Below are positions 21,967 through 26,706 of a stretch of 64,000 nucleotides of DNA, piece by piece. The stretch spans positions 49,168 through 113,167 of the forward strand of contig JAHLWZ010000819.1 in assembly GCA_020536535.1 (NCBI GenBank), in the 5' to 3' direction. Source of the stretch: Pelomyxa schiedti (taxonomy: Eukaryota; Protista; Evosea). Under the pieces are notes generated by a model. The model saw nothing but the letters and a program-made list of their open reading frames with translations. It was not told where the DNA came from and searched no databases. The position numbers were made by a program, and so were the translations under genes. Position 1 is the stretch's first letter, and every line of letters starts with the position of its first letter.

Positions 21967-22165
21967 CTCTTAGTATGTGCATAGATAGTATCAGCAAACA
22001 CAGCAAGTGACTTTGCACCACAATTTTTGAGATAAGAATAATTGTAGTTTGTGTGTTTTCTCCTTTTCTCCCACCAGAATTATAATCAACACTTGTTGGC
22101 CCTTGGAAAAAGAAAAAGAAAAGAAACCCAACAAACAACAACGAAACGAAAAACCCGAAGCTACG

Positions 22166-25100
22166 ATGGCTAATTTCAAGCAGCCGGCGCAATGGCGTGA
22201 CTTGCACAAGTTGTTCTTCAATGAACAGCTCATCGATGCCCACGGAGACCCCATTGTGGACATCAAGCTGAACCACTTCGTATTCCCCATGTCGACCCCA
22301 ACGCCTAGTGCCACAGCCACAGCAACAACAACAGCGTCGACCACTACCGCCACTTCTGGGTCAGGGACGGAGAAACCTAGCGAAGTTGACTTCCACGCGT
22401 ACACGATTTCGGCGGCGCTGGTCAATGGCCAGACGGGGCTTCGTGCCAAGAAGCAGTTCGGCCCCGACGACATCACGTACGACAGGCACCCCAAGCTGCG
22501 GGCGCTCGTTCCCCGCTGCTACACAGTCGTCTGCACCGCCCACCAGCCCACAGCCGACGAGGAAACTGAATCCCCAGCACCAACAGCAACGGCAACAGCA
22601 ACAGCGGCGGCGGCGGCGGCGACTACGACGGCAGAAACAGAGGCAGCAAGTGCAAGCAGCAGCGCTGCTGAGGGAGAGGGGGACGGGCTCGGGGGGCTCG
22701 CTGAGAGCGCTGCGGAGGACGCCAAGGCCGCACCGAAAAGGCGTCCGGGTCTGAAGTTCACTATTGTGGGAGAGATCAAGGGCATGCCAAAGTTCACTGG
22801 GCTAAATACTGATGAGGAGGGTGAGTGATGATATTCTATCCCCACATTGGTGTTGTGGAGTATGGAGGCAAGGAGACACAGAGGAGTGGGAAAAACAAAA
22901 TCCTAAAGATTTCCTCTGTCTCTGGCTTCTGTTTGTTTTCTTTGTTGTAACCCTGCTCATTTAATGCTGCTTCATGATCAATTTATTCATATTCTTTGGT
23001 TCCTTATCTCTTTATTCCCTCAGATGAAAGCACTTCCCCGAACCAGCACAGCGAGGAGCATATGTGCAACCGTGGTCTCATTAACCAAGCCTCACATTTC
23101 CTTGTTACAACAAAGGCAAATGGCAAATCTGCTGTGCTTACAGCATTCAAGTTTGAATCAAAGTTGTTTTACATTCTAGGATCTAAGAACACTCACTCGA
23201 TATTGGATGCGACAGATCTTAGTACCCTTGTTGACCAAGTGAAGCTCTTTTCTCACTAACATCCTGTTCATCTATTATAGATTCCAGACAAGCATCCCCT
23301 TGTAAAGGGAATTGCAGTGGTTATCCAGAATCACCTTCTTCAAGTAAAAAACCTCAACAAACTGGAGGTAATAGACAACACCATAAAAATTCATTCAACA
23401 CCAAGTTCAGGAACTGCATGACATTCTGCTAACACATACTCTGTGTGGAGAGTACGAAGACGGTGAACACATTGTCCCTCGTGAAGAACCTCCAAGTGAG
23501 TTGCGCAAATACCATCCCCCTTTTAACGTCTCTGCATGGGAAAAAAAGCCATCAGTTGGTTTGCCCTTTTACCAAAGCGTGGAGAAATGCCTGGAGCTTC
23601 CACTGACAGGTAGAGTTATTGATGTTGTCTTGGTAACAGAGTTACAGGTGCGCTGCCCTCAAGCGTATACAGGGATTTGGGCTGCCTACTGTAGAGTTTG
23701 CACTTCACCCTAAATCAGATCTCGTACAAGAATTTGTAAGACTGAGACGCACACCACACATGGAAGGAGCTGTATGTTAACCAGTCAAATTCTTCTATCC
23801 TTATCTTGATCAGGTTATAGATTTCATGGATCAACAAAAAGATGGAACCTTTACAGTCGTAGAGACGGTGAAATTCAAGAGTGTTTGGTTTGTCATCAGC
23901 ATCTTTTTCTGTTGATACATTGAATTGTTAGGTATATACTCACTAGATGTGTTCGTGAAATTATGAGGGGGGCACTTTCAGTGAAGCGTATTGAGGTTCC
24001 ATGGTACCATAATTTTTCTAATTGCTTAGCCATAAGACTAGGGAATGAGCAATGAGGAACGCATATCTGTCACTATGCAGCGAGTTACAAAGACTCTCCA
24101 CACGAGATCAAGAGACTTCTTACACTTATCAGTAAGCCGCACTAAGTTTGTATCGTTTCCCTTAATCATCACAGCCACCTACTTTAGCTGCGTATGAGGC
24201 GCTTTATAAAAAATTCATCAACTGGTATGTGGGAAAAGGGTACACTGGGCTTGAAATTAACACCAAAGGCAAGAAAAACAATAATATTGAGCGTACTTAC
24301 ACTTTTTTTAAAAAAGGTATGGCTGTAATGTGGACATCCTTCCTGAAGGTTTGCACCCTTTTTTGAAAAAAAAAAAAAAACCAATCTGGTCTGCTTAGGA
24401 GACACACACATCTGATGTCATAGACGAAACTGAGGTTTGTTACTCTCACCTTTTTTTTTGGGTCAATGTTTTTGAAAGGTTGACGCCAACGCTTTTGAAA
24501 ATGATCTTTCCACCACAAAACCTGCCTCCCCAAATACTACTTCAACCAAACCAAGTGAGCCAGCTCCCCCTACAAAGTCATCAGTCGAGCCACATGCAAG
24601 TGCTAAAACAAAAGTAACACCGGAATCCTCAGCAGCAATATCCACTTCCAGTAGCTCGGCTGCCGAAACAGAAACAGCAAGTCCCACTTTCGTGGAGGAT
24701 TCTTTACCAAGATTGCTTGTTACCACACATGGAGTTCCAGGCAATTACCTGTTAACTGCTTTATAACCCGTTTATAACACGTACATCATTCAGCTGATGG
24801 AAAAACTACTCGTGGTACACTGATCGTGGACATGCTAAATAAGCGTGGAATACGTTCCGTTCTGATCGAACAAGACCAGTATGGTGGTGATGGTGCCCAG
24901 ACTTTGAAAGTTTTTACTAGTTTCGCATCGAATCCCTCATATAAAGTAATCTTTCACTTCCTCCACTCACACCAAGACGGATTGTAGGTCATATTCCTTT
25001 CGCGTTGCAATAGCTGTAGGAAACAATATTTCAAGTACTTAGGTACAGAAGGGGTTGAGGTACCAATACTTTTTAACTCAAAAAAAATAGAGGTAGCGAG

Positions 25101-26394
25101 ATCCAAGGGATTGTCTGTTGTTGGCATAATGGCACAAGAAATTATGTCCGAAAAATTACTCCTTGTGAGTATGATGTTTCTCCATTACAATTTCTCACGG
25201 CGTTTAGGTGTGCATGTCCTCGATTCTGACACGTCAAAACCATGGAACAATGAATGCAAGTGACGCAAACTCACTAGCCAAGTAATTTTATTCTTGTGAC
25301 GGATGCCTAATTAAATATTACACATCAGCTACATCATGGTTCTTCTATCGTTTCGTACTGTCTTTGAAACACCAAAAGTGGGCACAGACGTCGACGTTCT
25401 CCACACTTTCAAAGCACTCAATGACTTTGATGTTGACAAAAGTGTACTGGACTTTGTTAAAGGTTATCTTGCTGAAGTCAAGCGAACACCATGGAAGGCA
25501 ACACCCAAACCCCTGGATGTAGTTAAGCAAAAAACAAGTAGGTACCCCTAATAGACTCCTTTCTTTGTTAACACCATTCAATTGGCAGTGATGGGCAGTA
25601 TCAACTACCAAGATCACCGAGTTGTTCTCGAGGAATTGTGCTCGCTACTTGTTGAACAGCTCATTGCTGATAGAGAGTCCCTTCCTTCCACCAGTAAGGT
25701 TGCTGCACCTGCTCCAACAAATTCTTCGAACACCAGAACTATGTGTAAGATGACTTTGGTGTGTGCTTTTATTTTCTAACTTGAGGACAGATTTTGCTGT
25801 AAAGGTACCAGAAGTGGAAAGAAATAAGTTGAGAGAGCTCTGCGAAACTCATGCTGCAGCACACTCTGTCTCACTATCAAATAGTGTAATTCCCTTTCCA
25901 TATTTCCTTTTTGGAGTGAAGTAACATTCCCAAGGTATGGAATGGAGAGCATCTCACTCTTCTTCATCGAAGCTCTTCAGGAACATGTTCCATCCCTTGG
26001 AACTCATTTGTTAATGCCGCAAGTTCTGCCGTTAGGCTAACAGTGCAAGTTCACACCATTGTCCTGGAGCCAAGTGGAGTTGTTGGAATGAAGGCAACAG
26101 TCAAGCACTCCGAACCAAGTGCGAAATGCTTTGGAAGCACCGGCGATGCCGCCGATGCCACTGAACTTGTTGCTTCCGGAATTCCTCACATTACCGGGTA
26201 TGTTTCACATATTTCTTTCACTGTTTTGTTTTGTTTTGTTTTTCTCACTAGAAACTTTTTACAGGTTTCTTCCAAAGGGAGTGAAGCCCTTCCAAACAGT
26301 AGAATACATCAGAAAGGCCAATCCTGCCCTCGTTTTTGCCCTCCCACCTTCACAGGTTGTTACCTTCACGGCCAAAGTTACTGCTTGCTCCTGA
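22166..26394 (+). CDS. TRL1: Trl1-like trifunctional RNA/tRNA ligase (adenylyltransferase + polynucleotide kinase + 2',3'-cyclic phosphodiesterase)
   Basis: Ligase motifs TTKANG (K at 23113), GSKNTH, CGEYEDGEHIV, ISWF, MEGA|VIDF, VKFKSVW|YILTRCVRE; Walker A GVP|ADGKTT (24731-24810); two 2H motifs HLT (25950-25958) and HIT (26187-26195); stop 26392-26394. Confidence 0.82.
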
Positions 26395-26706
26395 TCCACA
26401 TTTACCCTGCTGGGCCAAGTGAATTTCAATGACGCCATCCATAAATGTTTCTGGTTTTTACAACACAACTTCTGTGTGGGCGAAAAATTTTGTCAGTATA
26501 ATTTACAGGAAAAAGGATTCCGGCTGTTCCGGCAGTCCTAATGAGTACAAGATCACGTTCACTATTCCTAGTTGGTAACGTGGCGTAGGGCCAGATTTAG
26601 AAAAACAAATCCCCAGTAATCACAATAAAGACCAACTTTTCAGATGGTCTGGCTTTATAAACCACAAACCAATAGCGCTAACTCTTGAAATTAAACAACC
26701 AGTGAA

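Follow-up and report, generated by a model that had tools for sequence, protein, structure and literature searches.

The 64,000-nucleotide (nt) window analyzed here comes from the genome of Pelomyxa schiedti (contig JAHLWZ010000819.1, positions 49,168 to 113,167, forward strand) and contains, between window positions 22166 and 26394, a gene annotated in GenBank as "hypothetical protein Pelo_11580". We conclude that Pelo_11580 is very probably a strongly diverged homologue of the trifunctional 5'-phosphate RNA ligase, i.e., fungal Trl1, plant RNL and kinetoplastid Trl1. The gene structure, transcription, single-polypeptide architecture, motif conservation and predicted folds are all directly supported. 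A preliminary description, made from the DNA letters alone, had proposed such an enzyme in an apparently amoebozoan genome; the host is indeed an amoebozoan, P. schiedti being a member of the Archamoebae.

As that description had noted, the gene is hidden from single open reading frames. A scan of the region on both strands returned no long open frame, and the forward frames held short coding-looking blocks with GT...AG stretches of 40-70 nt in between. Exons were traced by hand and then adjusted to the joints of RNA contigs; for positions 22000-26600, contigs from three single-cell RNA runs and one DNA run were used. The resulting model runs from an ATG at 22166 to a stop codon at 26392-26394, and its introns measure 38-67 nt, except for the first (203 nt). 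The earlier estimate of about 15 introns was too low, the model supported by the RNA contigs having 21. At least 15 of the 21 junctions were seen directly in single-cell RNA contigs, with 13 of 15 matching the hand model exactly; the RNA joints set the end of exon 8 at 23995 and revealed the 48-nt intron at 24269-24316. All 21 junctions also aligned without gaps to proteins from the intron-free Trinity transcripts of Mastigella eilhardi. When the 87-residue translation of exon 20 was searched against 1.84 billion representative proteins, it led to one 1028-residue protein (P0001), which the spliced model reproduces letter for letter and which is GenBank KAH3756639.1. Three further matches to exon 20 (P0002-P0004) were repeat proteins from unrelated families and were discarded. 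An automatic splice-path model, scored by exon length and a simple splice consensus, was likewise rejected; it placed false introns in exon 1. Pelo_11580 is an expressed nuclear gene of P. schiedti.

Two spliced RNA contigs, X1 (1899 nt) and X2 (1786 nt), begin in the ligase exons and extend as far as the final exon. X1, the longer of the two, starts in exon 6, just upstream of motif IV, and the C-terminal part of the ligase, the kinase and the phosphodiesterase thus lie on one transcript. Exon 1 was almost without RNA coverage, with none at 22462-22769. In M. eilhardi, two transcript families were found, and full-length transcripts carried all three domains in one open frame. The order ligase-kinase-phosphodiesterase in a single chain of 1028 amino acids (aa), which had been likened beforehand to that of fungal Trl1, was therefore found in the gene model, the RNA contigs and the Mastigella transcripts alike.

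Every signature picked out from the DNA letters was present after splicing: nucleotidyltransferase motifs I, Ia, III, IIIa, IV and V, the downstream YxxxRxxRE element, Walker A, HLT and HIT (Table 1). The Walker A sequence GVPADGKTT had been said to appear only once introns are removed, and a GC-AG intron does split it. Residue equivalences with Trl1 of Chaetomium thermophilum were drawn from order and spacing rather than from superposition. The spacing is close to that of the Chaetomium enzyme (PMC6379707): the motif I Lys and the motif IV Glu are 158 residues apart versus 152, the motif IV Glu and the first motif V Lys 22 versus 23, and the second motif V Lys precedes the two Arg of the RxxR element by 8 and 11 residues versus 9 and 12. 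Arg439-x-x-Arg442, within YILTRCVRE, occupies the position of that element in Trl1 and is conserved in the relatives, as is His339, which may correspond to His227, an essential residue of the Chaetomium enzyme. In the Chaetomium structure, the RxxR pair and His227 were assigned to a sulfate that was interpreted as mimicking the 2'-phosphate of the RNA (PMC6379707).

The N-terminal sub-domain of the ligase could be mapped in the same way. Within the segment GPDDITYDRHPKLRALVPRC lie residues that may correspond to Chaetomium Trl1 Asp86 and Arg99, which contact metal 2 and the ATP gamma-phosphate (PMC6379707), and Lys209-Phe210 are candidate counterparts of Chaetomium Lys120-Phe121 and T4 Rnl1 Lys75-Phe76. 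GPDD, VPR(C) and PKF are conserved, PKF being invariant, and their spacing is right once the low-complexity insertion is discounted: the Arg of VPR and the Lys of PKF are 92 residues apart, and subtraction of the 71-residue insertion leaves 21, the fungal and T4 value. Low-complexity insertion into this domain, already remarked upon in the preliminary description, is real and takes the form of two tracts (aa 42-70 and the 71-residue tract at aa 125-195), both predicted to be disordered. The longer tract (22538-22750) differs in length among relatives and is taken as coding on the basis of the open frame and the GenBank model. On sequence grounds, the presence of all motifs in Trl1 order and spacing, together with their conservation, is far beyond chance.

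Structures were predicted separately for the ligase part (aa 1-545) and the kinase-phosphodiesterase part (aa 606-1028), the phosphodiesterase being modelled only within the latter, two-domain model. The ligase model was built on an alignment of 7 sequences and had a mean predicted local distance difference test (pLDDT) score of 70.6, with the core mostly above 85 and the insertions below 50; the second model was built on 6 sequences and had a mean pLDDT of 77.0. The ligase, P-loop and 2H folds that the preliminary description had led us to expect were recovered, with matches to the ligase domain of Trl1 (Trl1-LIG) and to the Trl1 KIN-CPD structure 6u05. In Foldseek searches of the PDB with the ligase part, the best seven matches were all fungal Trl1-LIG (E 4e-7 to 2.5e-6), followed by archaeal Rnl3, T4 Rnl1, Rnl2 and Naegleria Rnl5. 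With VIA-align, Trl1-LIG aligned over 322-330 residues (Z 15.4-15.7), from model residues 8-12 to 535-543 and, in the ligase-only entries, from chain residues 39-42 to 402-406. This alignment includes the N-terminal sub-domain, where model residue 12 aligns with Trl1 residue 42, and extends through the five-helix C-terminal module, the limits and Rnl6-clade-defining status of which have been described (PMC6379707). Five helices that follow motif V in the predicted model, and are known from that model only, would correspond to this all-helical Trl1-type module. T4 Rnl1 aligned over 244-269 residues (Z 13.6-13.7), and its alignments ended at chain residue 277-288 of approximately 375, leaving the Rnl1-specific C-terminal tRNA-binding domain unmatched.

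Among AlphaFold DB clusters, the ligase part was matched most closely by L8H1D0 (E 4.9e-20, TM 0.55/0.62, 20% identity, query 33-535), a 477-residue "T4 RNA ligase 1-like N-terminal domain-containing protein" that we take, from its accession series, to be from Acanthamoeba castellanii. This was followed by unnamed protist entries, then by a 1236-residue "tRNA ligase phosphodiesterase domain-containing protein", with fungal "tRNA ligase" entries from rank 13 on. For the kinase-phosphodiesterase part, the best PDB match by Foldseek was 6u05, the fungal Trl1 KIN-CPD (E 7.7e-9), which covered both domains and was aligned by VIA-align over 318 residues. The top 19 AlphaFold DB clusters for this part were all two-domain matches (query 1-419), and the named entries among them were tRNA ligase or tRNA ligase phosphodiesterase domain proteins; animal CNPase came next.

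When 5.8 billion proteins were searched with the whole protein and with a profile, only seven relatives were identified in total, of which the named ones were all from Archamoebae; the profile search added only one fragment, unnamed and from a public run. No Entamoeba protein was among the matches. P. schiedti itself has three paralogues, counting Pelo_11580, the others being Pelo_15070 (1140 aa, 47% identity to Pelo_11580) and Pelo_18122 (890 aa, 41% identity). Mastigamoeba balamuthi contributed one gene model, m51a1_g10109 (P0009, EukProt EP00727), in addition to the Mastigella transcripts. The ligase and kinase motifs were conserved in every relative covering them; in the kinase, Walker A, Asp654, SRCN and R729-x-x-H732 were invariant. 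The pair of HxT motifs was kept in four of six, i.e., the three Pelomyxa paralogues and Mastigamoeba, and was degenerate in one Mastigella paralogue. Pelo_15070 has 20 introns, 19-20 of them at alignment positions shared with Pelo_11580, and the two genes are therefore old duplicates in a nuclear, intron-bearing lineage rather than the product of contamination or recent transfer. In a tree of the seven proteins, Pelo_11580 and Pelo_15070 paired (support 91/93) and the rest was without resolution; as this tree has no outgroup, it says little on the timing of the duplications.

Two of the relatives depart from this pattern. The Mastigella protein P0008 (TRINITY_DN3450) keeps its ligase and kinase motifs, and has lost the His of the first HxT and the Thr of the second; by its sequence, its phosphodiesterase domain may be dead, which would leave a ligase-kinase. 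In P0009, a long N-terminal region with an adenylate/guanylate cyclase domain (PF00211) precedes the homologous part, and the second half of the ligase domain is missing. The cyclase fusion is probably not real, the gene model being chimeric or incomplete.

Table 1. Features of the Pelo_11580 gene and its product. Nucleotide positions are those of the 64,000-nt window.
Feature	Nucleotides	Strand	Residues (aa)	Evidence and remarks
Whole gene	22166..26394	+	1028 codons + stop	22 exons, 21 introns; hand model, RNA joints, database identity
Exons 1-8	22166-22820, 23024-23238, 23281-23367, 23411-23495, 23549-23609, 23648-23771, 23814-23887, 23932-23995	+
Exons 9-16	24042-24131, 24175-24268, 24317-24348, 24399-24434, 24479-24740, 24794-24945, 24988-25042, 25091-25164	+
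Exons 17-22	25208-25281, 25329-25537, 25589-25744, 25791-25885, 25935-26197, 26265-26394	+
Ligase (LIG) domain	22166..24481	+	1-540	Predicted model, Foldseek, VIA-align, AlphaFold DB
Second, shorter low-complexity tract	22289-22375	+	42-70	Predicted disordered
N-terminal sub-domain segment GPDDITYDRHPKLRALVPRC	22460..22519	+	99-118	Kept in all relatives covering the segment
Thr/Ala-rich low-complexity insertion	22538..22750	+	125-195	Inside N-terminal sub-domain; GC ~65%; pLDDT <50
MPKFTGL	22784..22804	+	207-213	Near-invariant in relatives
Motif I, VTTKANG	23104..23124	+	246-252	Lys249, predicted adenylylated nucleophile; Chaetomium: TLKENG
Motif Ia, GSKNTH	23179..23196	+	271-276	Lys273; Chaetomium: SKHS
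Motif III, GEYEDGEH	23447..23470	+	332-339	Glu333/Glu335
Motif IIIa, ISWF	23551..23562	+	349-352	Aromatic residue that stacks on adenine
Motif IV, EGAVID	23763..23822	+	407-412	Split by intron 6 (23772-23813); RNA joint 23771/23814
Motif V, KFK, then YILTRCVRE	23871..23959	+	429-431 (Lys429, Lys431), 435-443	Across intron 7
GC-AG intron 10, 48 nt	24269..24316	+		RNA joint in X1 and X2; GC..AG placement within 5-base ambiguity
Ser/Thr/Pro/Ala-rich linker	24494..24697	+	545-612	Between ligase and kinase; variable among relatives
P-loop polynucleotide-kinase-like domain	24698..25695	+	613-850	Motifs, predicted fold
Walker A, GVPADGKTT	24731-24810	+	624-632	Split by GC-AG intron 24741-24793; exists only after splicing
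GC-AG intron	24741..24793	+		RNA joint; splits Walker A; GC..AG allowing a few ambiguous bases at the joint
EQDQ	24868-24879	+		Kinase; invariant Asp654
SRCN	25000-25011	+		Kinase; invariant
TRQNHGT	25229-25249	+		Kinase
2H cyclic phosphodiesterase domain	25741..26391	+	866-1028	Sub-threshold Pfam tRNA_lig_CPD, two-domain structure alignments, language-model neighbours
First HxT, HLT	25950-25958	+	904-906
Second HxT, HIT	26187-26195	+	983-985

Apart from the two GC-AG introns listed in Table 1, all introns of the gene are GT..AG. The P. schiedti genome averages 7.43 introns per gene, with 1.59% of introns of the GC-AG type (PMC8887013), and Pelo_11580 is therefore intron-rich even for this species and has an above-average GC-AG rate (two of 21, or ~10%, against 1.59% genome-wide). 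Pelo_15070 has an apparent GT donor at the place where Pelo_11580 has the GC-AG intron that splits Walker A. The two exon 1 tracts (22289-22375 and 22538-22750) are made of microsatellite-like Thr/Ala codons with a GC content of ~65%, compared with ~42% in the rest of the gene, and DNA contigs from other places in the genome touch tracts similar to them; positions 22569-22636 were skipped as a repeat in the comparison of contigs with the gene. The next gene downstream, on the + strand from 26707, has a start typical of a C2 (calcium/lipid-binding) domain and is apparently unrelated to the ligase. A tRNA gene search of the whole window found none, and neither a literature search nor the supplements of the P. 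schiedti genome paper yielded information on RtcB, Archease or Tpt1.

Recognition of Pelo_11580 by sequence libraries was poor. NCBIfam and PHROGs gave nothing significant, Pfam searches with single exon translations returned nothing useful, the pieces being too short, and viral contigs scanned with the ligase profile yielded no relative. Across the family, the best Pfam values were 3.2e-5 for DUF7920 and 0.0014 for tRNA_lig_CPD. When the family profile was compared with the PDB, only generic P-loop proteins were matched; these included, weakly, the Mucorales kinase 9drz, which shares the RCN and R..H.T motifs. Language-model neighbours were more telling: the ligase part fell among DUF7920/RNA_lig_T4_1 clusters (score 0.96), and the nearest neighbours of the phosphodiesterase part were tRNA_lig_CPD clusters (score 0.95). 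PF25536 (DUF7920) is the Pfam model closest to the ligase core and co-occurs with RNA_lig_T4_1 in eukaryotic ESM Atlas clusters, and, for this reason, is itself probably an unrecognised Rnl1/Trl1-like ligase family.

Several observations weigh against the assignment of Pelo_11580 to the Trl1 family or against a Trl1-like role. The Pfam matches of the protein itself were all below threshold, i.e., tRNA_lig_CPD (PF08302; E 0.03, 14.2 bits versus a gathering cutoff of 23), DUF7920 (E 0.05) and KTI12 (E 0.095), and no family member matched PF09511 RNA_lig_T4_1 or PF08303 tRNA_lig_kinase. Sequence searches of the PDB with exon 2 or the whole protein found no ligase and no phosphodiesterase. The structural models rest on the shallow alignments and mean pLDDT values given above. 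In VIA-align comparisons of the kinase alone, PSTK, Mucorales kinases, Kti12 and Trl1-KIN were about equally close (Z 13.0-15.2), Trl1-KIN scoring 13.0-13.2 against 14.6-15.2 for PSTK and the Mucorales kinases, and the kinase fold therefore does not discriminate Trl1-KIN from PSTK, Kti12 or PNK kinases. In motif IV, Asp412 occupies the place of the adenine-contacting Arg305 of Chaetomium. Three paralogues in one genome are unusual for a housekeeping tRNA ligase. Finally, the only archamoeba studied, Entamoeba histolytica, has two RtcBs, of which RtcB1 serves in tRNA splicing, and is devoid of Trl1 (PMC8718801).

The missing gathering-score Pfam matches mark divergence and do not contradict the fold evidence. 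Comparison of hidden Markov models and structures with the Trl1 domains, which the preliminary description had proposed, had a divided outcome, positive for structure and, at gathering score, negative for Pfam. The strong divergence that it had claimed is evident in both, identity to Trl1 in structural alignments being 12-18%. Standard domain models miss these proteins at such depth of divergence, hence the GenBank label "hypothetical".

The closest known system is fungal Trl1, founder of the Rnl6 clade (Saccharomyces cerevisiae; C. thermophilum 6n0t, 6n67, 8rbj and 9r3w; Candida KIN-CPD 6u05). Pelo_11580 resembles it in the one-chain order of domains, the near-identical spacing of the nucleotidyltransferase motifs, the five-helix C-terminal ligase module, and the RxxR and His at the proposed 2'-phosphate site. 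It differs, besides its low identity and two low-complexity insertions in the N-terminal sub-domain, in having Trp/Phe rather than His in motif IIIa, Asp rather than Arg at the end of motif IV, a Walker A of the form G-x-P-A/G-D-G-K, HxT motifs 79 residues apart and three paralogues per genome. Two further trifunctional enzymes, plant RNL (Arabidopsis AtRNL) and kinetoplastid Trl1 (Trypanosoma brucei TbTrl1), have the same domain order as Pelo_11580, and neither gave a significant sequence match in the searches run. To judge from the names of the entries and the style of their accessions, the top AlphaFold DB matches to the kinase-phosphodiesterase part included plant, algal and kinetoplastid proteins and, for the ligase part, kinetoplastid entries ranked above fungal ones.

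Other ligation systems share less with it. Branchiostoma floridae RNL with PNK/CPDase, and the Mucorales sealing-only ligase with its kinases (9drz, 9d8a), carry out the same activities in the 5'-phosphate pathway, but with healing and sealing on separate polypeptides, whereas these are fused in Pelo_11580; the Mucorales kinases were among the best fold matches to the kinase part (Z 14.6). L8H1D0, a stand-alone ligase without kinase or phosphodiesterase, resembles these separate sealing enzymes. T4 Rnl1 shares with Pelo_11580 the adenylyltransferase fold, including the Rnl1-type N-terminal sub-domain, and T4 Rnl1 and Pnkp perform the chemistry, i.e., healing of cyclic-phosphate and 5'-OH ends and ATP-dependent sealing, that is predicted for Pelo_11580 by analogy. 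The T4 system, however, consists of separate proteins, heals ends with a DxD phosphatase rather than a 2H phosphodiesterase, and has no 2'-phosphate requirement. RtcB, a 3'-phosphate ligase and the tRNA ligase of animals, Dictyostelium and Entamoeba, could share cellular substrates with Pelo_11580; it has an unrelated fold, depends on GTP, uses a His nucleophile and joins 3'-P directly to 5'-OH, and bears no resemblance to Pelo_11580.

By analogy with Trl1, we infer the activities and cellular substrate of Pelo_11580. The C-terminal 2H domain (His904, His983) would open a 2',3'-cyclic phosphate, leaving a 3'-OH,2'-PO4 end, and the central P-loop kinase (Lys630, Asp654, Arg729) would phosphorylate the 5'-OH end. 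The N-terminal ligase, adenylylated on Lys249, would then transfer AMP to the 5'-phosphate and seal the ends, with His339 and Arg439/Arg442 as the probable readers of the 2'-phosphate. A Tpt1-type 2'-phosphotransferase would be needed afterwards at the sealed junction. The likeliest substrates would be tRNA exon halves from the splicing endonuclease, other broken RNAs with cyclic-phosphate ends, or both. The presence of three paralogues in P. schiedti suggests some division of labour.

How far the enzyme serves tRNA splicing is the question on which the most serious alternative turns. This holds that the enzyme class is as proposed but the job is another, RtcB splicing tRNA while the three Trl1-type paralogues act in RNA repair, stress responses, or defence against viruses or toxins that cleave RNA. 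Such a division would fit the RtcB1-dependent splicing of E. histolytica, the reports of RtcB in Amoebozoa generally (PMC13247085), the presence of three diverged paralogues in one genome, and the trypanosomes, which have both ligase types (PMC4931112). Against it, the three-domain Trl1/RNL has been the tRNA-splicing ligase in all organisms tested, namely yeast, plants and T. brucei (PMC6379707, PMC4931112). We give this explanation appreciable weight, although short of an even chance, and consider it roughly an even bet that at least one of the paralogues works mainly in tRNA splicing.

It is very improbable that Pelo_11580 is only a relic or pseudo-enzyme, with its architecture kept and its catalytic activities lost. 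The extreme sequence divergence, the lost HxT residues of the Mastigella protein P0008 and Asp412 in place of the motif IV Arg could be read in that sense, but every mappable catalytic residue is kept in the three Pelomyxa paralogues, i.e., the Lys nucleophile and motifs III, IV and V of the ligase, the P-loop Lys, Asp654 and Arg729 of the kinase, and the two HxT motifs, and the gene is transcribed and correctly spliced. Just as little credence can be given to recent acquisition of a viral or bacterial RNA-repair cassette of the T4 Rnl1/Pnk type, or to contamination of a single-cell assembly. The ligase and phosphodiesterase parts have many viral clusters among their language-model neighbours, and the fold of T4 Rnl1 ranks closely behind that of Trl1-LIG; however, nearly all of the 21 spliceosomal introns of the gene occupy the same positions in a paralogue of 47% identity, its relatives were found only in other Archamoebae, and neither the scanned viral contigs nor PHROGs or NCBIfam provided a match. 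Moreover, the best AlphaFold DB matches were three-domain or Trl1-like proteins, and the C-terminal domain of T4 Rnl1 was unmatched. That the gene model has joined what are in fact separate genes or transcripts for the three regions, a case the preliminary description had named as one that would overturn its proposal, is hardly credible: although no single RNA contig covers the whole gene and exon 1 is almost without coverage, X1 and X2 exclude it for the C-terminal part of the ligase, the kinase and the phosphodiesterase, the Mastigella Trinity transcripts hold all three domains in one open frame, and the spliced frame passes from one domain to the next with no stop codon or start signal.

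The 5'-phosphate heal-and-seal tRNA ligase is considered to be narrowly distributed, being known from fungi, plants and trypanosomatids (PMC4931112), and our literature search found no paper linking Trl1 to Pelomyxa, Mastigamoeba, Acanthamoeba or the Archamoebae. The preliminary description had suggested that such an enzyme in an amoebozoan could mean an unexpected tRNA-splicing route. The find is indeed unexpected with respect to the literature, in which Amoebozoa are viewed as using RtcB (PMC8718801, PMC13247085); it is less so with respect to AlphaFold DB, which already contains Trl1-like ligase domains from several protist lineages outside fungi, plants and trypanosomes. The kind of enzyme is well known, and the greater interest lies in the depth of divergence, the three intact paralogues, the contrast with Entamoeba and the anaerobic host.

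The present analysis extends this enzyme type to the free-living Archamoebae, which have intact, expressed three-domain Trl1-type enzymes in several copies, and gives proteins labelled "hypothetical" a concrete functional annotation. As E. histolytica is without Trl1 (PMC8718801) and no Entamoeba protein was matched, loss of the family in the Entamoeba lineage is indicated. The very distant sequences described here could also sharpen models of the Trl1/RNL family. According to a recent suggestion, many lineages came to replace RtcB by Trl1 because RtcB is vulnerable to oxidation (PMC13247085), and this explanation of the patchy RtcB/Trl1 distribution has a natural test case in an anaerobe that carries Trl1-type ligases. 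A more far-reaching proposal, which we put forward tentatively and consider rather unlikely as a whole, is that free-living anaerobic Archamoebae keep an old, lineage-specific clade of Trl1-type enzymes in which duplication gave rise to several paralogues, all catalytically intact, with roles split, for instance, between tRNA splicing and repair or defence, probably beside RtcB, and that all of these were lost in the parasite Entamoeba. If this were true, an anaerobe with no oxygen-related reason to avoid RtcB would still be maintaining and expanding the 5'-phosphate pathway, which would speak against the view that the sensitivity of RtcB to oxygen is what chiefly decides between the two ligases in a lineage.

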